A stretch of DNA of 64,000 nucleotides from Rhodosorus marinus CCMP1338 (Eukaryota; Plantae; Rhodophyta), in the NCBI GenBank assembly GCA_029953675.1, contig JAMWBK010000002.1, positions 2,480,001 to 2,544,000 of the forward strand, given 5' to 3'. The position numbers and the translations under genes were made by a program. How positions within the stretch are numbered: the first letter of the stretch is position 1; the number at the start of each line of letters is the position of its first letter. Positions 1 to 40,234 of this stretch are shown piece after piece. The notes under the pieces are model-generated. The model saw only the letters and a program-made list of their open reading frames with translations, was not told the origin of the DNA and searched no databases.

Positions 1-120
1 ACTTGGTGTAGTAGGAGCATTCAACCTCCGTGTTCTTTAATATCTGCATGTATAACACCGGCAGTTAACGTCCCTGTGACACAATGGGTCACCATCGCAT
101 CACTGCAGTATGACTTTCAT

Positions 121-2604
121 TCAATTTGTGTCCTGCTCGCCCACGCCGACACCCGCAGGCTCAGGCTTAACGCAGTCCCATAGTTTCTGATATGCTTCGC
201 TTTTATCTGAGTCCAGTCCAAGCTCGTTGATGTCCGAACCAAACTTTCGTACGTCCAAGTAAAGCTGCATGCTGATTTTGTCCATCTCTGCATTGTTGCC
301 TGCTGCACCTATGTTCAGTCTTCGCAGTGTATCTGCAGTCTGTCTCACGTTGAGAAGCAAATCTTTCGCCAGTTCGTAGTATCCAGTTACAGTTAATTCG
401 ACAACCTCCTTCAGAATTTTGTTCTTCTCACTTTCGGTTAATGTAACTTCGGGATCCGTCAAGAACTGTCTCAGCGGCTTCAAAACATTGGGGACAAAGC
501 GACTATACTGTGTTGGCGCTGGTCTGTTGGTCATTCTGTACGTTGCAAGAATTCCTCGCATTGTCTGCAAAGTCTCTATGCAACCCTTTGATATGACGGA
601 CGAAATTCTCTCTCCCAGGTCTGGCTTAAGCGAAGCCAGGTTTTCTATCGCGTCGGAGAACGCGTTGTCGATGGCAGTTGTAGCTTCGCTCGGGAGCTTT
701 CCGTTAGACCCCATCCGCACGACTGATGCCAACTCAGCCTGCAATCTCTCGGTTAATGTCTCCACATCAGAAAATACGACAGAAACATCCTTCGCGAGCA
801 TGTCGGTCCCCCAAGATTCTTCTAAACCCTTTTTGGTCCATGTCGTGTACCTGAACCGTACCGAGTCGCTACAATGAGAAAAACAACAGACTCCCCTTCT
901 TTCCCCTTCTTCACTCAAGCGCATCGACTTCACTTACCTCGCTAGGAGCTGAAGCGACAGTTTCAAAAATTTGTGAGTTAGCGGCCGCAAAAAGACGTCA
1001 TCATCCCAGCACTTTCGAAGCGCGGACACCAGCGCCTTCGTCGCTTGAAGACGGTAGAGATCAGGAGAGAGAATTCGAACGGCTGTTGTTTCCAGTGTGT
1101 CAGCTCCTTTTACGCCAGTAGAAGAGGTCGAGAGTGAGGGAGTGCTTTTTAGAGCATCCTCAAAAGTATTTGTGACCTGAGCGAAAAAAAACATTGCGTG
1201 AGACGCGAGAAGCGATAGCAAAAAATGCATGTCCGCAGTTTTTGTAACTCACCTCCTGAAAACGAAGCTGAAAATACACAGGCAGGCTCCATCTTCGCCA
1301 AAATTTAACGGTCTGCTTATGCCTCTGGAGGGTTTCAAGCTTCTCCGCAGTAGAACAAAGTTTTTCCAGGAGGGAGAATATCCTGGTTGCTCCCATGAAA
1401 GACTTGTGAAAGACGTCGGCTATCCCAGGAGAGAACACATTAAGATTGGATTCGATCCCGCTCTCGACTATAAGCACATAGAAGACGGCACGCCTTCTGT
1501 TTAGCCACTGCGTCATCGTCTCCTGTTAGGTAGCATGTTTGTTAGAAGAGCCACTTACTCTCTGGCCAAATGGCGTTGTTCACAAAGTCGAAAGATCGAA
1601 GTCGTTCCTCTGAGTCGCAAAGGGACGTCACGGGATTGCACTTCTCCCTTACAAAGTCACCGATTAGTATCTCAGCGGACTCTAGAATGTCTGCCGTGGT
1701 CACGCTTTCAGCGTTGTTTCCCATCCTTTCTTCTGCCAAAGTTGAGCAAACTGACATCTTGAGCTTTGTGCTGACGAAGGGTTTCACAACTTCGGATTGA
1801 AAGAGATCCTCCGCTGCGCTGATTATTCCAGCAATGGCTATTGCTGAAAGTGCTCGCAAGAGCAAGTCCTGTCCAGTGCCGGGAAGTGAATAGTTAAAAG
1901 CGCTTAGGCTTTCTTCTAGTACCAGCTGAGGGGCTAAAGTTTCAGACTGGTGGATAAGAGTTTACCTTGTCAGCTGTGAGGGCTTCCTTTAACCATTGTT
2001 CCAGCTGCTCCCGCACATGCGTCTTCAACTTTCCCAAGCGGGGTGTCAAGGCGACAACGTACTTCGAGTTTTTGTCCACCTTGGCCAAGCAAAAGTCCAG
2101 CTGAGAGCTCACCGCGGCAGTACGTTCCAAAATTCGATAACGTTCATCGGATTGGCCATCGCAAGCTTCTACTTCTTTCAACAGTCGCTCACATTTGTAG
2201 ACGAGTTCGGAAATTCGGAGACATAACTCAAGTAGGTTCCTTTTGCTCGCATGCTGACTCCGCTTATCCAAGATTTTCAGGAGCTGTTCGATGTCCGATT
2301 CGAAAGAAGCTAAGATCACTTCGACTTCCTCGCGAAGCTTTTCGAGAGGCTCCAGCACCTCGTCGGTGAGTTGGTCAACATCGGAGACCGCCTCCCCTAG
2401 CGACATGAACGAGGAAAAATTTCCTTGGATCTGGCCAACGATCTCATCTGAGATCTCATCTAAGTGTACCTGTAGATCGTCGCGCAAAGTAGACAGCGGA
2501 GCCTTCACCCGAACAACCGAAACGAACTCCGACATCGACTGCTCCCTGTTTTGCAACGCCTCCCGTTCGAAGCACAGCTTTCGAGGGCCTTTGGCTTCCA
2601 TCAT
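121..2604 (-). CDS. COG2: Conserved oligomeric Golgi complex subunit 2 (about 5 exons)
   Basis: ORFs 1942-2604, 1542-1865, 1160-1516, 934-1230 and 121-933 join through GT-AG introns (e.g. 1869-1965, 1468-1558, 851-938). N-terminal 'LCFERE..L..LRDDL..L....NFSSFMSLG' coiled coil, internal 'NVFSPGIADVFH' and C-terminal 'YRMTNRPAPTQYSRFVPNVLKPL' match the COG2 family as I recall it. Confidence 0.78.
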
Positions 2605-3006
2605 AGGTTACACTCTTATCACAGTTGCTCAACCACATATGTCAAAAAGCGTTATCTACTATTCTAAAACCCTGCTTCCTCCCACGCATACCCCAGCTCC
2701 TTTTCTCCAATGACCCCAATCGATCCTTATGCTAGCAAACGAGCAATTTATTTCTAAAGTAAGCTGCATATCTTAAATTAAGATTCATAGATTCAATAAA
2801 TAAAGACATAAAGAAATAAAAGAGAAATGTTTTTCTATATTTAGATCATTGTGTTCTATTCTGAAAAGCAAGTGCAATGAGTTGCATTAAACTCGGCTGT
2901 GCGTGTTTGCGTCTTTGGCGAAGGGGACCACCAGCATGTGAGAAGGTCTGGAAGGTTTTAGTTCATAGGAGGCATCAATAGATCATCCTGGCTATTACAT
3001 ACAAGC

Positions 3007-3913
3007 ATGGAAGGGTTTAAGCTAATTCTGGGGTCTGGATCTGCCAGTCGGAAGGAGATCTTAGGTGAAATGGGACTGGAGTTTGAGGTGCTCAAGGCTG
3101 ACATCGATGAGAGGGCGATTCGGCACGAGGATCCAGCTACGTTGGTGAGCATCCTTGGGAATAAGAAGGCCGATGCAATACTGGAGAGGATAAATTCTAA
3201 GGGTGTTCCCAAGTACGAAGGGGAGGTGTTCCTGCTGACCGGAGATCAAGTTGTTGAGCACAACGGTGGGTGGAAGAAGTGCGAGGGGACGCACTCCACT
3301 CACTCGACTGAGAATTCGATCTGACAGAACCTCTTTTGGCTCCCGTATGCTTTCCTCGCACTCCGCGCAGGCAAGATTCTTGAGAAACCTTTGGATGAAA
3401 AAGAGGCCAGAACGTTTATTGAAGGGTACAACAGAGCTCCAGCTAGAACCGTGGGGAGCATAATCATTACGAATGTGAAAACTGGTGAGCGATTTGAGTC
3501 AGTCGACACAGCAGAAATTTACTTCCACGAAATCCCAGGCGAGGTACAGTTTGAAAATTGGGAGGAATCTGCGACCGCGATTCAGAGTCATCGCTGTTCA
3601 TAAATCAACAATGCGGATGAATTCCTTCGTGCTCATAGGTAATTGATAAGCTGATTGAAGAAGGAGAAGTTTTCTACTGCGCTGGTGGTCTCAAAGTTGA
3701 AGATCCCCTGGTTTCTAGGTGAGTCCTAGCAATTTGAACAGATCAGCTTCCATATACTTATTCGCAATTGCGCCCCGACATCAATCCAAAAATTTCAGAT
3801 ATGTTGACCACATCGCAGGCGGCATGGACTCCGTTATGGGACTATCCAAGGCCACGGTCGAGCGATTGTTGAAAAATGCGATGGAGAGCGCCTCAGGCGC
3901 GAAGGCAGTTTAG
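3007..3913 (+). CDS. Maf-like nucleoside triphosphate pyrophosphatase (4 exons)
   Basis: 'LILGSGSASRKEIL', 'KADIDERAIR', 'LLTGDQVV..NG/KILEKP', 'YCAGGLKVE' and 'DSVMGLSK' are Maf/YhdE motifs. Canonical introns restore the frame. Confidence 0.9.
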
Positions 3914-4008
3914 TCGTTTGGCAGGTGTTCCGCGTTCTTGTCGATGATTTTCATATTCGCTTCAATTGATCTCACAGCATTCAGCCGCCGATCGCGTGAT
4001 CAACTATA

Positions 4009-5255
4009 TTAATGTCTATACCTCTTTCTGCCTCCACCATCCCTTTCCCCATAGCCTCTGTCTCTGTCCCTATCCCGATAATCCCGGTCGTTGGTTCTAT
4101 CACGCCCACTATTCCTGTCCCTGTAGTCTCGCCCTCCATCCCTGGGACCTCTATCTCTGCCTCCCCCTGGTCTGTCACGGCTATCTCGGTGATTGAAGTC
4201 CCTTCCTCGCCTCTCACGGAAATTGGATTCACGGTCTCTATCGTCCTTGGATTCGGCAGGCTCGATCTTCTTTGGAGGTTCCTTCTTCTCTGGCTTTTTA
4301 GGCTCTCGCAACCTGTGGGAGATTAAGCGAACCCTTCCAAGTTAGAACTGATCCAAGGAATCTGAAGGCAGTCTGGGTTGTTTCACCTTTTGGGTAACCA
4401 ACTGGGTACGGTCCGTCCACGCTCAATGTCCACAGATATTCTCTTGCCATCGATTCTCCTTCCGTCGCCGGCTTTGTATGCCTCCTTCATGTCCTTTTCC
4501 TTCTCGAACTCTATAAAGGCATAACCACAGGGCAGTTTCGTGTCACTTCGGATCGGCATCCGTACGCTTTTTATTCGCCCGAAAGTCTCAAACTCTCTCA
4601 TCAGCTTCGCCTCCGTTGTCTCAAGAGCCTTGATCAAGAAAGCAGTAGTCAGAAAATGCACGTCGGAATCCGTCTACAAACTACGTATGGCCGTAGTAGG
4701 TGCGTCGACCGGAAACATGAGCCGTATTCGTGCAGGCGTACCAATCTTGACACAAACAGGGTCTTGAAGGGGTCCTCAGTCACGTTGTCTTTCGCCGCTT
4801 TAGGATCATATAGTTTCTTCTCCTTTTCAACTAATTTACGCATTCGCTCACGACGTTCTCGCGTTTGACGAAGCCGAGCTCTCGACGGGGTTTCGTACCA
4901 AGGGATCTTTAAAAACTCCTCCTGAGCCTTCTCCTGACTCTCCTTCGACTCGAAAGAATCGATGAACTTGGCCAATCCTTGGATTTTTCAATTTGAAAAA
5001 GAGCAAAAATTGCGTAAGATAGTCAAATACATCAAACCCTGACAACCATCGAAAAGAAGAAGCAAGAAACAGGCGAATCACGCGTCATCAAGGATAGCAC
5101 TCACCATCCAGCGGCCGCAACTTCTTAGCTCTCGGCGGCGCAACATGCGGCGGTGCTTTCCTGGCCTTAAAAAGCTCAATAATATTCGGCGGAAAGATAA
5201 ACTTCTGCTGCCCGGAGTACGCAGGACGGAACCGATTGCCGGAATGAGGTCCCAT
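4009..5255 (-). CDS. SNRNP70: U1 snRNP 70 kDa protein (4 exons)
   Basis: N-terminal 'FPPNIIELFKAR'; 'DPFKTLFVSRL/ALETTEAKLMREFETFG...GYAFIEFE...DGRRIDGKRISVDIERGRTVPSWLPKR' RRM; C-terminal RD/RE-rich tail. Confidence 0.93.
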
Positions 5256-16378: not shown

Positions 16379-18343
16379 CGTCTGCTACGATCCGAAAGAC
16401 ACCACCAATCCAACCACACGTGATACCCGATCAAAGGATCTGCACTCCCTCGTGTTTAAAAAGAAAAACCCTGGAAACCCAGAAGAAAACCGGATTCCAA
16501 CCAACAAATACGGGCTACAGTTTTTGCAATACAAACATATCCAAAACTTTTCATCAGGCTGACCACCCCCTTCCCCATCCCAATAGCCGGCGCCCAGCAC
16601 TCTATCTAACGATGAACATCCCCCTCACCATCCGCGTGACCCGAAACCCTCCCAAAAGGAGCAACCGGTAAAAGCAATGACTTCCAATATTTTTAGAGGC
16701 CTCTCCTTCCAAAGTCCAACTTCCATTGCCAATGAAACAAATGAAACCAAAATCCACCACCCCTCAATACTATTTACAATCTGCTTGGTCAGGTCGGTTT
16801 ACAAAACAAAAACCCTTTAATTATTTCTTCAATATCCTTATTCTTATTTTCAGCATATTTTCTGGGAGGGTTACTCGTTTGGAATGGAACCCCCCAGGGT
16901 AGAACGACCAAGCTTGCCATTTCGATTTTATTTTTTTTGCTCTCGATTCCGGCGGTGACGGATATTTTTCTTGTCCGTGAATCTGTGTAATTTCTTCTAA
17001 GCAACGTAAAGTTGCTTTTTAAAATATGTTTTGTGACTCAAGTCTTCTTTTAGAATGTGTTTGGAACAAAAACTTCACATTCACGCGAAATTGTCATGAA
17101 TAAGGGTAAGTGAGGTCCTGAAATAGATCTTAAAACGTTTTATGAAATGTGTAGTTTTTGTATTTATATACCGAGTGTTATAAAACTAATTTGCTATTTT
17201 AATCATTTTATTGATAGTTGCGATTATGTTGTGATAATATTGTAAAACTCTGTGAGTTTTACCCTCACCAAATATTTCGAGATGACGAGGCTGTCGCTCT
17301 TACGAGTGGCGAGGCAACTCACGGTTTGAAACAGGTCGACTTAAAGTTTCCTTGGTGCGCAATCCTGACGCATATAACATGACGTGCTTCCTGTTGGACT
17401 GCCCCAGCAAACCCGGACGTGGACTTGTCAATGAGACATGAGAACAGGCTTCCTAGTGTTTCCGGCTGAATACGATCACCCTTCAATGAGTTGGCTTCTT
17501 CAGTTCGACTTGTGCTAACAAATCATCGGCTCGAGAGACTGAGCGTCACTGAGAGTGGAGCAACTCTTGAGACCTATGAAACCCAAAGTTGTTCAGTCAA
17601 CTGAGGAGATGATCGATAATGGACTATGGGTGAATGTTCTCATCGCTCTCCAACCCATCACTGGTCGAGATTGAATCCTGCTGGTTCACCTCAACTTGGG
17701 AAGGTTTCAGTCATGTGGATTGACATTGTCCTACACTGGCGTACATGTGAAGGGAGTCTTCTGGCGAAGCCAAGCAGTAGTTAAAAGCAATTTTCCAGGC
17801 CTTGGTGCCCACCTTTACCGGGAGCGATCCTTCTCAAAGGACGAGCCAACTTTAAAGTCGCAAATCAGGGTATTTCAAAAACTGCTTTTCGAGTTTTATA
17901 GTAAGTATTTCTAGCATTTAAATTCAAACTAGATTTATTGGTGGAAAAATTATCGCCCATAATTTCAATATATTATGACAGTATTCATTTCTTCCTTCCG
18001 TTCTATAACGGCGAGGAAGGATGCATTTAGTAAGAATCTCGCTCGGCGCTCTAGGGTTTGGCTCCGAGACTGGGACGACATAGCAATTGCTCTGGGCTTT
18101 TGGGCGAGATTTTCTCATCATTAATTTAGCTCGGCGCTGTAATACCATATATGGTCTGCATCGAGAGGCTTTTTGGGGATCAACGACTGAAGCGACTGGT
18201 GTTAGAGTCCTGTGGGGTTCGGGTCTGGTTCGTAGGGTTTCATGAGGATCGTATTGGAGAGCCGTTTTCTGGATGGAGTGAAAATCTGCAGCTAACGGAA
18301 AATCAGAGGGATCTGGCAGATTGAGTTTCAGCACTTGCCGAGG

Positions 18344-19636
18344 ATGGCGGACTTTGAGAGCTTCTTTGGCACTGCTGGCCCCTTGGAGGTGACTGTTCAT
18401 GGATCGAACACAAGTCTGGACTGGAAGAGCATTGCTAGGGCGAAGCAGTTTAAGACTGGGAGCTTTGGATGGTATGGGAGCGGCAGGACAAGTTGCAGTT
18501 GGGATGGGGTTGAATCGGATGTGGTTCTGAGTCTAAGCGTGACCGTCCTCGGAAGCAAGAAGAACACCGACGAGCTTGAGAGCAAAGAAGCCTCGTCTAA
18601 GGCTAGGACTCAAACGCTAGACCTTGAGCTCTTTCAGGGACTTTCGAGCGCTGATAGCACAGACTTCGATTTGTCGACAAAGACACCGGCTTACAGGGAA
18701 CAAAATTGTGGGCCAGACCATACTCAAGCGCAGAGCCAGGAGCTGAAAGTACGACCGCACGCAGAAAATCCTCAGCCACAGGGTAACGATGGAAATTCAA
18801 GGCCTGCGCCGGGAGTACCTATCGGTCACGGGACTAAACCAGCTCCTGGTGCGAAGAAGAACCAGACACAGTCGGAACAAGTAAATCGCAACCCCCCCGA
18901 TGCGTGGGGTAATACTGGGTTCAGCACCAGCCATGCCCAAATTCAGAGCTTCCAAGCTGGTCGAACGATAAAGAAACAGGGACCCAGCCCGGGGAGCTCT
19001 GCCGAGAGTAAACCTGTCGGTCGAGGGATTGTGCCGAACGGAGTCTGGGACGATAGGGGGGTGAGCGACAATTTCGCACATGTGGATAGCTACTTTAAGA
19101 GCAAACTTGTCATCACCGAGCCCTATGTGAAGCAGCACTTCAACGAAGTTTTGTTCTTTCCGGACAAATCTGGTAACAACGTGAAGAAAGTTCTCTACTA
19201 CATAAGCTCCTCAAAGAACACTTTAGACGTGTGCGTCTACGCCTTCACAGACGACCGATTCAAAGACGCGCTGCTAGATCTTCACAAACGCGGAGTTCGA
19301 ATAAGAGTGCTATCCGATGAGACGATGTCCAAGGTTAAAGGCGCAGATGCACATGAACTCTTCGTCAACGGCATTCAGGTTCGCCTCGGCGGTGCGAGCT
19401 CGTACACAAGCATGCATCACAAGTTTGCGGTTGTGGATGACACGATCCTCTTGTCAGGCAGCTTCAATTGGACAGTGCAAGGAAGCAAGAAAAATTATGA
19501 GAACGTGATTATCACCTCAGATCCGAGGCTTATCAAAACCTTCTCCTGCGAATTTGGAAGACTCTGGGGTTCAATTGACAAGATTCCGTCCGCGACGGAT
19601 AAGCAACCACCGGAGAAACCAGACGGGAAACCGTGA
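18344..19636 (+). CDS. PLD6/Zucchini/Nuc-like single-HKD protein with extra N-terminal domain; intronless
   Basis: C-terminal 'VLFFPD...LDVCVYAFTD...RGVRIRVLSD...MHHKFAVVD...LSGSFNWT....NYENVII' is the MitoPLD/Nuc fold (HKD at 19415-19438). First in-frame ATG at 18344. Confidence 0.88.
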   Translation: MADFESFFGTAGPLEVTVHGSNTSLDWKSIARAKQFKTGSFGWYGSGRTSCSWDGVESDVVLSLSVTVLGSKKNTDELESKEASSKARTQTLDLELFQGLSSADSTDFDLSTKTPAYREQNCGPDHTQAQSQELKVRPHAENPQPQGNDGNSRPAPGVPIGHGTKPAPGAKKNQTQSEQVNRNPPDAWGNTGFSTSHAQIQSFQAGRTIKKQGPSPGSSAESKPVGRGIVPNGVWDDRGVSDNFAHVDSYFKSKLVITEPYVKQHFNEVLFFPDKSGNNVKKVLYYISSSKNTLDVCVYAFTDDRFKDALLDLHKRGVRIRVLSDETMSKVKGADAHELFVNGIQVRLGGASSYTSMHHKFAVVDDTILLSGSFNWTVQGSKKNYENVIITSDPRLIKTFSCEFGRLWGSIDKIPSATDKQPPEKPDGKP

Positions 19637-19950
19637 GTGCGGCCTCATTCAAAAGCCAGCAGACCAGCGCGTTTGAGCTTTCCGAAGCCGCTCTCCAGGT
19701 TGCCATACCGTGCCGAGAGTCGGCTTCTACCGCTCTGCACAAGATGAGGCAATCGCTTGCGGATTAACGTAAACCCTAGTCGTTCCAGTTGTAGTCGGCT
19801 GCACGTGCGACACAGGAGAGTACCATGGACTCGCAGAAGAGATAATACAGACCGCATATTTATAGAATTAATGAACGCTTTTATTCATTGAACAAAATTT
19901 CTTTACCACAATATAATGGATTGCTGTTTCCGGCTGTACCTGAGAACTTT

Positions 19951-22812
19951 TCACTTTCCATAATCGAATCCTGGGTACCTGTCTACGCACTTGGGCAGCT
20001 CTAGTCCCATTGAGGATGCTCTTGCCAAGTACGCCTTCCAGCTCTTCTCGCAGTCAGCGAGGGAAATCTCCTTCAATCGTAGTTTGTGGGTTCCGGCATT
20101 TTCGTCGGAGCGAAGGCGGTGGTTCTCGTCTCGATATTTGTCACGAACTACGCCCAGAATCTCAAATGTTCGGTTGCTCGGCTTCAGCCCTAGCGTACGA
20201 ACGAGCTCCAAAGACGCAGACTTGGAGAAGACCTCCTCCGATCTAAGATTGAGGAACGTCACCGATTCCGCCTCGCGAAACTTTGAAATCTCCTGAGCAA
20301 CCGCTTCAGTGTTCAGGATATAAGAGTTTATTAGCTGCAGAGGAGTAAGCTCGTAATCCGGAGCGATAGCTGGTGTTTTCGAGTTCACCGAGTTCGCAGT
20401 CTCCATCCACTGATAGCCATCACGATCCGAGAAGAAGCCGGTTTCGTAAATCGATCTCAAAAGAGCCGGAGGCCACTTCCGCAGGTTGATTATCGTTAGC
20501 TGAAAATTTCTTCCAAATTCCCGCAGGACGATGTCATAGTACCACGACTTAAAGTTAGGATTAGTTTCAATATACACAATTGGTCCGCCAGTATTAACAA
20601 GTCGTACGTGTCCACGAAGCCAATGAACAACCTGCAGAGGTACCCCGTTTTGCTTTTCGATAGTTCCGCCCCAGCCTCGACTTGCGGAAACGGGCGTTCT
20701 CTGTGATCGCATCAATGTCTCCAGTTCCTTAAGAATCATCGTATACTTCACATCCTTCCTGTTTCTGTAGCTGTGCGGCAACGAAGTGTTTTGCATCCTC
20801 ATCGCACCACCTGAAGAGCACTTCTTCTCTGGGCAGGCAGGTTCGTGCAAGGATACTACGTTTCCCTCTACTGTTCCTAGCAGATCTGCGAGGTAACGAG
20901 ACCCGCTCCGGCCAGCGTTCACAGAAAATACCATATCTGCGAGCTTGGGAAGGTTGGACTCTGGGATCCATTTCGAATTCAGCAGCGATGCCCTGGTCCT
21001 CATTGCGGACTCTATGACTTCCGAAAGGACTACCAGCCTTCTCGTCTGCAATGCCTCCAGAGCTGCGGATGCGTAGGACAAGGATAACGTCGCAGTTGAG
21101 TCGATGCCAACGACCGAAAGGTGATGGAATACGTTAGCTTTCTCTACCAGTTCCTTCAAAAGTTGTCTTACGTGCGAAGTTGGACGAGATTCATCTTCTG
21201 GGCCGACAAGTAGGACAAACTCAACGTTCACATCCTGCAAAAGATTCACGCCGACCTCAAAACTTTGCCCCTGTCCTTCTTTCACACTTTGAGCGATGAC
21301 GAGCCGTTCTCGAGGATTGGATCCATGAAGCGAGGAAATCAACGTGTTCCGGATATGACGTTCTTCATCCAGCCGATCCGGAAACGTGTTCGTTTGAGCC
21401 AAGCGTGCTGAAGAATCAAGAAAGTCCTGATCAACGGGGCCAAGGAGGACCAAGATGTGCTCAAGCAGCTCCTTTGGCAAAGCATCGTGCAAAACGTACG
21501 TAACACGCCCATGCCGGGCTCGCGGCAACGCAGGTAGGGTTAGCGAGCTGCTATCTTCCTCATCAATAAGTTCCTCCAGAGCATCCCAATCAATGGAAGC
21601 GGATGCGGGTAGTCCCTCCAGAAGCGTCCTAAGGCCACCAGGTGTTTCTCGTCCCCATTTCAGCACCTCTCTTGCTCGCCACGACTCTACTAGAGAGAAC
21701 ATATCGTTTTTCCACATGGAATTAATAACAAGGTCTCTGGGGATTGGGAAGATGTGCTCTTTGGGGAGTAGATTTCCGCTAGGATGGAAGAGGGCGTCGA
21801 AGATCTTCCCTCGAACGGTCGCGTCTGGGACGTTCGCTCTCCTCCCTAGCGCTTCATACCATGCGCTTTTGAGAATGGCGTTTTCTATGCTTGCAAATTT
21901 CATCTCTATGATCTTGCACCTCTCAGTGCCTTGTTTTCCGCGCCCTTTGTTCTTGGGGGGAGTTCCGCACAAGTTTCGGGGGCATTTCAAAGTATGGATT
22001 GATGCATTCTGCTCACCGAGATCGCGAGAAAGCGAGGTTTCCGTGTTGTACATGACCTTCCCGTCGTCAGCGAAAATCACAGTCTGACGTCGCTCCAGGA
22101 AGTTCGTCGAGAAATCCTCCTCCAGAACTCTATGCCAAAAGGGTGACTTCCAAGCCTCCAGCCAGGGAAGGTTTAGGCTTTCACCTGGTTTGAGCTGCAA
22201 GATTCTTTCGCGAAGTGAGCCGTCCCGCACGCAGTTCGCGGAGAAGAACTCATCGTAGTCAAGTAGAACAAAATGGGTACCCCCTGCTTTCCGTCCATAC
22301 TCCAGAAGAATGTTCCGATCCCTCATCTCCTCTCGTCTCTTCCACGGCCCAGTTTTCTTGAGCAGAACCTCCACTTTGTGCTCATGATGGTCCTCAATTA
22401 ACCCAACAGTGTTGTCCTCGGAGTGGTCGTCAAGGACAACCACTGAGTCCACAACCCGACTTATCGCTGTCAGAAAGAACGGAACGGCATTTCTTACGTT
22501 CCGGACCTCGACAAGGGCGACGATCTTGCTTCTAGGAAGATTTCGATTTCCTTTGTACCCATCAGAATACCACGTCACGCTCAAATCAGCTTCGACGGCC
22601 GTCCTTGTGCCTTGAGATCGGAAACGAAACCCTACGGCAACCGCTGCCACGACCGCACCAACGATCGCCAAAAGCGCCAGGAGAGTCTTAGCATTCAAAA
22701 ATCTCTTCAGAGAGGACCGCCGCCTTTTGCTCTTCGAGTTTGGATCCTCAAATAAAGGAATTTCGGGGCGGTTCTCCTTCCGGTTCCCCTTCCTCTTCTG
22801 CATGCGGATCAT
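19951..22812 (-). CDS. Type II membrane protein: GT2-like glycosyltransferase fused to a PAPS-dependent sulfotransferase; intronless, 953 aa
   Basis: Basic cytosolic tail, then TM 'LLALLAIVGAVVAAVAVGF'. GT-A motifs 'VRN....FL......DSVVVLDDHSEDNT', 'RNILLE' and 'FVLLDYDE'. C-terminal P-loop-like 'FSVNAGRSGSRYLADLL', 'SLHEP', 'YIETN' and 'IINLRK' are typical of Sulfotransfer_3-like enzymes. Confidence 0.85.
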   Translation of the reverse strand: MIRMQKRKGNRKENRPEIPLFEDPNSKSKRRRSSLKRFLNAKTLLALLAIVGAVVAAVAVGFRFRSQGTRTAVEADLSVTWYSDGYKGNRNLPRSKIVALVEVRNVRNAVPFFLTAISRVVDSVVVLDDHSEDNTVGLIEDHHEHKVEVLLKKTGPWKRREEMRDRNILLEYGRKAGGTHFVLLDYDEFFSANCVRDGSLRERILQLKPGESLNLPWLEAWKSPFWHRVLEEDFSTNFLERRQTVIFADDGKVMYNTETSLSRDLGEQNASIHTLKCPRNLCGTPPKNKGRGKQGTERCKIIEMKFASIENAILKSAWYEALGRRANVPDATVRGKIFDALFHPSGNLLPKEHIFPIPRDLVINSMWKNDMFSLVESWRAREVLKWGRETPGGLRTLLEGLPASASIDWDALEELIDEEDSSSLTLPALPRARHGRVTYVLHDALPKELLEHILVLLGPVDQDFLDSSARLAQTNTFPDRLDEERHIRNTLISSLHGSNPRERLVIAQSVKEGQGQSFEVGVNLLQDVNVEFVLLVGPEDESRPTSHVRQLLKELVEKANVFHHLSVVGIDSTATLSLSYASAALEALQTRRLVVLSEVIESAMRTRASLLNSKWIPESNLPKLADMVFSVNAGRSGSRYLADLLGTVEGNVVSLHEPACPEKKCSSGGAMRMQNTSLPHSYRNRKDVKYTMILKELETLMRSQRTPVSASRGWGGTIEKQNGVPLQVVHWLRGHVRLVNTGGPIVYIETNPNFKSWYYDIVLREFGRNFQLTIINLRKWPPALLRSIYETGFFSDRDGYQWMETANSVNSKTPAIAPDYELTPLQLINSYILNTEAVAQEISKFREAESVTFLNLRSEEVFSKSASLELVRTLGLKPSNRTFEILGVVRDKYRDENHRLRSDENAGTHKLRLKEISLADCEKSWKAYLARASSMGLELPKCVDRYPGFDYGK

Positions 22813-23306
22813 TCTTGATCATACTTGTTTCCCCCCAAACCCCGTCGTGATTCGCTTCTCAGCTCTCATGCTCGTGTTCCTAACAGGAAAGACAACATCA
22901 GCCTTACCTCCAACAAGCCTTTAGTAGTGTTACGGAGTTATCTCCAAAAGACTTTCATAAATGCAGCATACCCTCACTCCAACCTCCTCAATACGGAAAG
23001 CCTCTTGCGCATGGAAACCCCAACACTTTCCTGACAGACTGAGAAATTCCAAATTCCAAACTCGGAACAGCACTGAGGGTGAAGAAAAGACTTTCCAGTT
23101 AATGAGGAGGGTTAATTGAGTCCTTAGGACCCGGAAGCTTCATCCATCGGACTATCGTGCCATAGTTTGAGCCTCGACGAAACCCAACGTTGTTGTTGTT
23201 ATTTTTCTACCAGATGCATCGCATTAGTTTCAAGTTGGACAGGTCAAACTTTACGAAAGAAGGTGCCTCCGACTTTCAATCGTCGGCAAAACAAATATCT
23301 GATCTC

Positions 23307-28800: not shown

Positions 28801-32802
<4,002 letters not shown>

Positions 32803-39406: not shown

Positions 39407-40234
39407 ATGAACCAGAACGCATTCGGAGGTGGGTTTGGGGCCACCAATAACAACAATGGAAATGGAGGAGTTTTCTCGAGACTTGGAGACAACAACAACA
39501 ACCAGATGGAAGGCGGAAATAGATCTAGTGGTGGAGCAGGATTTCAAGGGGACAGGTCGGGCCCTAGAAACAGTCAAAACTCGAGGGTTTGCAAGTTTTG
39601 GCTTAAGGGTACTTGCAACTACGGGGCAAACTGCAAGTTTGAACATCCGACGGGTGCGAATCCTGGTGGTCAAAGCATGTCAAATCCTCAGAACAACACT
39701 ATGCGCGACGGAGGGCACAATGCGTTTGGGAACAATAATAATAACAACGCCTTCGGCGCCGGAAGAGGCAATAGCAATAATACGTTTGGTGCTGGTGGAG
39801 GAGCAGGGTTTGGAAACGACAATAATAGGAATGGTTTTGGATTCGGAAGTACTAGTGTAGGAAACAATAGCGGTGGCAAACAGAAGAGCGTATGCAGGCA
39901 TTGGTTGAAAGGACAGTGCAAGTTCGGACCAGAAAACTGCAAATATGAGCATCCCGCAGCACAGGAGGAATTGATCCTTGAGGACCTAATGAATGGAATA
40001 CCCCAGTGGCCATTATCTGGGTACGGAAGGAAGAACCAAGCATCTGTTGTTGTTGGGGACGTCTCCCCGGAGGAGTTACGTGTCTCCGGATACGCCGCCG
40101 CGTTCAGCGGAGCTACCAAGGATGCAATTGTTGAGTCAGAGGCTCAGGCCGTTCAAGCGCAAAAACAAAAATTCATTACCGTTGTAGATGAGAACAAAGC
40201 AAAGATTGAGAGCATCAAACGGAGCTATACCTGA
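39407..40234 (+). CDS. CCCH zinc-finger FG nucleoporin, NUP42/NUPL2/Amo1-like; intronless
   Basis: Two C-x7/8-C-x5/6-C-x3-H fingers ('CKFWLKGTCNYGANCKFEH', 'CRHWLKGQCKFGPENCKYEH'), about 9 FG motifs in a G/N-rich background, and 'QWPLSGYG...DVSPEELR' as in NUPL2. Confidence 0.75.
   Translation: MNQNAFGGGFGATNNNNGNGGVFSRLGDNNNNQMEGGNRSSGGAGFQGDRSGPRNSQNSRVCKFWLKGTCNYGANCKFEHPTGANPGGQSMSNPQNNTMRDGGHNAFGNNNNNNAFGAGRGNSNNTFGAGGGAGFGNDNNRNGFGFGSTSVGNNSGGKQKSVCRHWLKGQCKFGPENCKYEHPAAQEELILEDLMNGIPQWPLSGYGRKNQASVVVGDVSPEELRVSGYAAAFSGATKDAIVESEAQAVQAQKQKFITVVDENKAKIESIKRSYT

Follow-up and report, generated by a model that had tools for sequence, protein, structure and literature searches.

A Zucchini-like enzyme of the red alga Rhodosorus marinus appears to have exchanged its membrane anchor for a widespread, undescribed N-terminal module

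Zucchini/PLD6 has been studied almost solely as a mitochondrially anchored animal enzyme, and its substrate, RNA or cardiolipin, has long been disputed. What, then, is a relative without the anchor doing in a red alga, and what stands in the anchor's place? This question is raised by a gene at positions 18344-19636 (+) of a 64,000-nt stretch of the Rhodosorus marinus CCMP1338 genome (contig JAMWBK010000002.1, positions 2,480,001 to 2,544,000, forward strand), which was analyzed as a whole and is referred to as the window. The 430-aa product of this gene, hereafter the HKD protein, joins an N-terminal domain of ~75 aa, hereafter the module, through a low-complexity linker to a C-terminal domain with a single HKD motif. 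As judged from sequence comparison, the HKD protein is a PLD6-type enzyme whose membrane anchor gave way to a widespread and undescribed module. Such a soluble relative, with neither anchor nor zinc finger and with a separate module, would be a simple system in which to study the role of the HKD clade outside the piRNA pathway.

The open reading frame (ORF) runs uninterrupted from the ATG at 18344 to the TGA at 19634-19636, a complete intronless coding sequence (18344..19636, +; 430 aa plus TGA in the ORF listing) for module, linker, and HKD domain, and it is one of only nine ORFs of at least 250 aa in the 64 kb. Since in-frame stops were found upstream of 18344, this is the first ATG. The gene call on the contig (assembly GCA_029953675.1, whose depositing paper concerns the red alga Rhodosorus marinus; PMC10250338) yields the identical 430-aa intronless product; the species belongs to the Stylonematophyceae (Rhodophyta). 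Furthermore, an ORF from an MMETSP transcript (P0002, 430 aa, flagged "complete") is 85% identical to the HKD protein and shares its MADFE start. The contig that carries it (L002; MMETSP/JGI Ga0186320_100351, 1-4968; 4,968 nt) is colinear with window positions 18156-22949 at 87-90% nucleotide identity and therefore begins 188 nt 5′ of the HKD ATG; no intron was seen in the HKD gene when the two were aligned. It should be noted that L002 also runs into the convergent neighboring gene and represents two overlapping transcripts joined in assembly rather than one clean transcript. The N-terminal peptide quoted in the initial annotation of this DNA was correct, and the possibility raised there that the real transcript starts downstream of the module is answered by this sister contig, which extends 188 nt beyond the ATG and encodes a complete ORF with the same start. 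The HKD gene is an expressed, intronless nuclear gene of R. marinus.

Ratios of nonsynonymous to synonymous divergence (dN/dS) were calculated by segment with the Nei-Gojobori method from one close pair, the HKD protein and P0002 (synonymous divergence, dS, ~0.27). They amount to 0.10 for the HKD core, ~0.15 for the segment that precedes it (aa 236-272), 0.36 for the module, and 0.38 for the linker. Judging by these ratios, every segment of the gene is coding sequence under purifying selection. The 5′ leader additionally contains an upstream ORF of 17 codons at 18242-18295 (+; MRIVLESRFLDGVKICS, followed by a stop), which lies in the frame of the main ORF and whose ATG is not conserved in L002.

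The C-terminus carries a single-HKD catalytic domain of the PLD6/Zucchini/Nuc type (19166..19579, +; aa 275-412), as had been proposed from the letters alone, and the assignment draws on PF13091, on PLD6 matches in the PDB, and on the dN/dS of 0.10. PLDc_2 (PF13091) matches aa 286-408 with 5.5e-30 and 104.4 bits, against a cut-off of 27, and is covered over profile positions 4-132 of 132. The best solved relatives of the domain, with closeness judged from PDB match scores rather than from a phylogeny, are mammalian PLD6/MitoPLD chains (9lkx, 2.8e-25, 92.2 bits; 4ggj, 1.2e-24, 90.2 bits), and the PLD6 matches span aa 277-428; Drosophila Zucchini-type chains come next, followed by bacterial Nuc (9.3e-12, 47.7 bits) and NucT (38.9 bits). 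The catalytic motif H358-x-K360-x4-D365-x6-G372-S373-x-N375 (HHKFAVVDDTILLSGSFN; 19415..19468, +), located by regular expression and by reading of the sequence, is present in one intact copy from H358 to N375, and its HxKx4Dx6GSxN pattern is invariant in P0001, P0002, and P0003. The protein thus shares with animal PLD6/MitoPLD/Zucchini (4GGJ, 9LKX, 4GEL) a single-HKD PLDc_2 domain, the sequence pattern MHHKFA(V/I)VD...GS(F/L)NWT, and an FFP motif before the first helix. NCBIfam models of other members of the fold class stay far below their cut-offs: the NucT models reach 61 bits against a cut-off of 297, DpdK of the Dpd system 31.2 bits against 100, and DrmC of DISARM 27.2 bits against 133. 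The last two resemble the algal protein in their PLDc_2 fold class and these weak profile matches, but with 27-31 bits against cut-offs of 100-133, and the algal gene is eukaryotic and stand-alone, with no defense-operon context.

Compared with the animal enzymes, the algal protein differs in its host, a red alga rather than an animal germ line, and in its layout: the transmembrane anchor and the zinc finger are theirs, whereas the module, the long linker, and a soluble pre-catalytic segment are the alga's. No transmembrane segment was detected anywhere in the HKD protein, whose highest 19-residue Kyte-Doolittle window reaches 1.01, in agreement with the initial annotation, which had seen no N-terminal anchor. 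The N-terminus is also unlike a mitochondrial presequence, since its first 15 residues include three acidic and no basic ones. In published structures, the zinc finger of PLD6/Zucchini is a Cys/His insert that follows the FFP motif and precedes the first core helix. The HKD protein lacks it: the stretch from FFPD (271-274) to the first PLD6-aligned helix (from ~aa 279-280) is only five residues long, and aa 236-296 contain no Cys, so that there is neither space nor a set of ligands for a zinc finger. Because the anchor and the zinc finger, the two defining features that were tested, both fail, we class the predicted protein as PLD6-like and not as a PLD6 orthologue. As for the suggestion that it might be a plain mitochondrial phospholipase, nothing marks the HKD protein as a membrane-anchored mitochondrial enzyme.

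The position that a transmembrane helix and a basic stretch occupy in PLD6-type relatives is taken here by the soluble pre-catalytic segment (19049..19165, +; aa 236-274), which ends in FFPD and is conserved in P0002 and P0003; the residues kept in both include R238, G239, N243, F244, H246, and V247, followed by Q264, H265, F266, and FFPD. The nearest non-fused relatives recovered, the protist PLD6-like proteins P0004 and P0005, are ~40% identical to the HKD protein in this domain and share its FFPDK(S/T)G motif, but retain the MitoPLD layout, with a transmembrane helix and basic stretch immediately before FFPD and no module. Bacterial Nuc (1BYR) and NucT (6EHI) are, like the algal protein, soluble single-HKD proteins without a zinc finger and offer the favored functional analogy as homodimeric nucleases; they differ in their weaker similarity (47.7 and 38.9 bits) and in carrying a signal peptide or nothing where the alga has its module.

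Between module and enzyme lies an S/G/P/Q-rich, low-complexity linker (18572..19048, +; aa 77-235), which is probably disordered on the basis of its composition and a grand average of hydropathy of -1.10 and in which no Pfam match was found. The initial annotation had described it correctly as low-complexity, yet it measures ~160 aa rather than the ~190 aa stated there. The fusion recurs in three further sequences, P0002, P0003, and P0119. P0003 is 48% identical in the HKD part and shares the N-terminal motif, but its linker is reduced to ~50 aa; P0119 (285 aa), which represents a second kind of fusion, combines a canonical CPISK module with a PLDc_2 domain 41% identical to that of the HKD protein across a linker of ~35 aa. 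Both are encoded on contigs of their own, and their C-terminal tails read as strongly basic and similar to nuclear localization signals (NLS). All four fused proteins lack a transmembrane helix, and the spacing from FFP to the catalytic His is fixed at 86-87 aa. A metagenome scan with the red-algal motif for more fusions retrieved one truncated bacterial locus, with no HKD domain.

The module itself (18344..18571, +; aa 1-76) was delimited by profile HMMER, a family HMM, the alignment, and AlphaFold 2 (AF2), and its signature reads KQFKTGSFGWYGSGR ... VTVLGSKK. The N-terminal 79 aa by themselves gave no match in a word-indexed search, and only an exhaustive search exposed the family: a three-sequence profile run with HMMER against 1.84 billion cluster representatives retrieved 348 representatives at E≤1e-3. 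Hence, the domain that had been called an orphan belongs to a large family. Among 150 proteins with a domain match in a local re-scan, the median length is ~110 aa, and 36 of them carry two copies. The consensus of a 38-sequence alignment is xCPxxxxxFxxxAxPLxVxxxGxxxxAxxKxFSTGSxGWYxxGKxxVxVDGxxVxVQxxxNxTVxGSK; the algal module aligns with it end to end, with F7, A11, G39, G42, W43, S71, and K72 conserved and the further signature residues F36 and S40 present, and six residues are inserted ahead of its strand 2. When the three red-algal-type sequences were left out of a family HMM, aa 1-80 still reached 69.4 bits (HMM positions 7-71 of 73, query aa 5-75); in a six-frame translation of the window, this HMM finds one copy of the module. 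Pfam, NCBIfam, PHROGs, and PADLOC all lack a model for the module, its profile found no match among PDB sequences, and our literature search found no paper on the module or on Zucchini/PLD6 in algae. These comparisons place the module in a large, undescribed family of bacteria, best sampled in Myxococcota, and scattered protists. With hundreds of clusters at 50% identity, spread over bacteria and eukaryotes, the latter with at least four supergroup-level lineages, the family is still without a database model.

Two apparent kinships of the module were discarded. One member resembled the C-terminus of the RNA polymerase III subunit RPC4 (E = 0.0022), but with 2 of 100 members matching, this was attributed to chance. 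A second module copy inside the HKD motif (SGSFNWTVQGSKK) was likewise rejected: the region at 19409-19498 (aa 356-385; SMHHKFAVVDDTILLSGSFNWTVQGSKKN) matches the last two module strands (...vnlTVvGSK) with 5.9 bits, which is not significant and probably reflects convergent strand-turn-GSK chemistry.

Modeling of the module with AF2 on the 38-sequence alignment gave a mean predicted local distance difference test (pLDDT) score of 90.9. The predicted fold consists of a helix (4-10) and strands at 14-19, 26-35, 41-53, and 56-67, which form a four-stranded antiparallel sheet. Thus, the module has both homologues and a confidently predicted fold, the absence of which had been named at the outset as a reason to discard the fusion. 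Foldseek searches with the single module returned nothing from the PDB at E≤0.001 and nothing significant among the BFVD viral models. The best PDB neighbors, coat proteins of single-stranded RNA phages, reached E 0.55 and a template modeling (TM) score of 0.29 and were discounted at a TM score below 0.3; together with the empty PDB profile search, this leaves the PC4/Whirly-like fold that had been suggested without support. A natural tandem, P0021, was modeled at pLDDT 93 and a predicted TM score of 0.86 with its two modules packed as one compact unit, for which Foldseek found no significant neighbor in the PDB either. Going by predictions and Foldseek alone, the fold may be new.

The fusion partners of the module offer the first functional hints for this family. 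The module is found alone, in tandem, or joined to DEK_C, a Fis-type HTH, or an HKD domain. Searched with the profile, the annotated protein collection yielded 91 proteins, nearly all of them "hypothetical proteins" of 75-95 aa without a Pfam domain, and the few named hosts are Polyangia or Deltaproteobacteria. With each GTDB species represented by a single genome, a motif and tblastn scan confirmed 474 loci; the top 80 of these come almost entirely from Kofleriaceae, Haliangiales, and other Myxococcota, in a ranking that is biased because a Kofleriaceae sequence stood first in the query. The initial annotation had pointed to small stand-alone proteins of bacteria such as Planctomycetes and of some protists, which is in essence correct: bacterial and protist relatives do exist among the 348 representatives, and the bacteria that can be named are Myxococcota (Kofleriaceae/Haliangiales). 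EukProt names three eukaryotic hosts, Euglena gracilis (P0113), the dinoflagellate Yihiella yeosuensis (P0123), and the foraminiferan Bolivina argentea (P0108), the last with a tandem module. The proteins of E. gracilis and Y. yeosuensis carry DEK_C above the Pfam cut-off; further partners are HTH_8 (P0076), AHSA1 (P0067), and, with a weak module match on which we do not rely, sigma-70 region 2 plus repeats (P0037). Other members have basic, NLS-like heads and acidic tails typical of nuclear proteins. Set beside the small Kofleriaceae proteins of 75-95 aa and the DEK_C-linked modules of E. gracilis and Y. yeosuensis, aa 1-76 of the HKD protein are a full-length family member with the same predicted fold, and they differ in lacking Cys-Pro, in the 6-residue insertion, and in being joined to an enzyme.

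Several observations were made on individual module loci. Two bacterial proteins, P0076 (353 aa) and P0042 (275 aa), have in common an unannotated N-terminal domain of ~110 aa (…GPxYTxPFxLExGxATFH…) before two modules, and P0076, which ends in the Fis-type HTH, has the look of a one-component regulator with the module at its center. At L083-L085 (5001-5231), from one bacterial lineage, the module gene is followed closely, with no change of strand, by an MshEN-domain gene and recO, an order that was not seen in two other contexts examined; clustering of ORFs across 44 high-GC loci was swamped by spurious ORFs. Nine IMG/VR contigs classed as viral (L092-L100) each carry a stand-alone module gene at ~4001-4216. 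Since ten neighboring ORFs on two of these high-GC contigs gave one PHROG match only, of unknown function, their viral assignment is doubtful. A phage or defense origin of the module was rejected, as it is absent from PHROGs and PADLOC and the neighbors that were checked show no phage hallmarks.

The sequence describes a soluble phosphodiesterase with a single HKD domain, a member of the PLD6/Zucchini-Nuc clade whose catalytic motif is intact and which is tethered to the module by a probably disordered linker. How might such a protein work? By analogy with Nuc and Zucchini, the enzyme would be a homodimer that forms one active site from two HKD motifs, and dimerization would set two tethered modules side by side, echoing the paired unit predicted for natural tandems. 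The Gly/Ser/Lys-rich loops FSTGSxGW (after strand 2) and GSK (after strand 4) would lie at the same pole of the sheet, because of the strand order of the antiparallel meander, and look like an anion or phosphate site whose partner is most likely nucleic acid or a chromatin component. Steered by the module, the nuclease would then act on a substrate that is soluble and probably nuclear or cytosolic, and not at the mitochondrial surface. We lean, with moderate confidence, towards this reading as a whole, in which a soluble substrate, nucleic acid or chromatin, is reached by a Zucchini-type nuclease that the module targets or regulates, because the partners of the module bind DNA or cut DNA or RNA and the tails of P0003 and P0119 are NLS-like. 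The frequency of two-module members (36 of 150) and the modeling of a tandem as one unit are also in its favor.

A number of points weigh against it. Of the nucleic-acid binding that the initial annotation had considered possible, the link through DEK_C, HTH_8, and HKD partners stands, while binding by the module itself is something we infer from the company it keeps among nucleic-acid proteins, and its charge is mildly basic (family median pI 8.07, net charge +1). Moreover, DEK_C and HTH_8 already supply DNA binding, so that a role as a sensor or in protein binding would suit the module just as well. In the comparison with P0002, the module changes at the pace of the linker (0.36 versus 0.38), far above that of the HKD core (0.10), and the red-algal copies have lost the N-terminal Cys-Pro motif present in most members. 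Bacterial neighbors are not conserved, the called-gene contexts of three unrelated contigs having nothing in common. Homodimerization and localization are both assumed from the family, and for the animal enzymes, it is itself debated whether the PLD6/Zucchini substrate is RNA or cardiolipin, between which the present data do not discriminate. A broader version of the targeting reading would make the module a new phosphate- or nucleic-acid-binding fold or ligand sensor of Myxococcota and protists, probably spread by horizontal transfer, and the fusion a Piwi-independent, soluble Zucchini-type RNA/DNA-processing nuclease guided by it; in this full form, we consider the idea tentative and rather doubtful. 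If it were true, Zucchini-like nucleases would have been recruited to nucleic-acid metabolism more than once, outside animals.

Two other functions for the module deserve consideration, each of which we judge unlikely. It could be a ligand-sensing switch of the nuclease, or one for protein-protein contact or oligomerization, comparable to the sensors of bacterial-immunity effectors, and not a substrate binder. The division of labor in one-component regulators fits this idea, with partners that already provide DNA contact (HTH_8, DEK_C) or catalysis (HKD), as do the compact tandem, the near-neutral charge of the module, and the sub-threshold resemblance of the HKD part to DrmC and DpdK. However, these two scores lie far under their family cut-offs, no match points to a ligand, the module is absent from PADLOC and PHROGs, and the bacterial module genes stand alone without conserved defense neighbors.

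The HKD protein could, with a similarly low probability, be the alga's equivalent of MitoPLD, a cardiolipin or phospholipid hydrolase in which the module replaces the transmembrane anchor as a peripheral membrane or head-group binder. Its best solved relatives are annotated as "mitochondrial cardiolipin hydrolase," the closest non-fused relatives are membrane-anchored in the manner of MitoPLD, and Gly/Ser/Lys loops with an exposed Trp and Phe could bind the head-group of an anionic lipid no less than the backbone of a nucleic acid. Such a role is at odds with an N-terminus that is not presequence-like, with the lack of a hydrophobic segment, with the nuclear look of the basic tails of P0003 and P0119, and with the other contexts of the module (DEK_C, HTH_8, NLS-like or acidic tails), which point to the nucleus or to DNA and not to membranes. 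Finally, that the module is a separate small gene or a 5′-leader ORF that fell into frame with the HKD gene by accident is highly improbable: the long low-complexity linker does change quickly and the MMETSP contig does merge the convergent neighbor, but a single ORF without a stop between the module and HKD parts is held at an identical 430 aa across a dS of ~0.27, and the same order recurs with short linkers on the separate contigs of the far more distant P0003 and P0119.

Regarding the other genes of the window, the convergent neighbor (19951-22812, -) is an intronless ORF of 953 aa whose N-terminal part includes a hydrophobic segment and whose only match, to the glycosyltransferase-2 model Glyco_tranf_2_4, is borderline (27.1 bits, cut-off 27.5). 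L002 carries this gene at ~90% nucleotide identity, with a product of 949 aa and no Pfam match on record. The stop codons of the two genes are 315 bp apart in the window, and the coverage of both by L002 (HKD gene, +; 949-aa gene, -) reflects either overlapping 3′ ends or a merger during assembly. Further downstream, an ORF at 30422-32167 (+) encodes an SMC hinge domain (PF06470, 1.3e-31) and is preceded by a long ORF at 29549-30391 (+); the two are probably exons of an SMC-family gene. A 275-aa ORF at 39407-40234 (+) with tandem CCCH zinc fingers (zf-CCCH_4, 1.3e-16) likely encodes an RNA-binding protein, and at the opposite end of the window, an ORF at 121-933 (-) matches the C-terminal part of COG complex subunit 2 (COG2_C, 6.7e-40).

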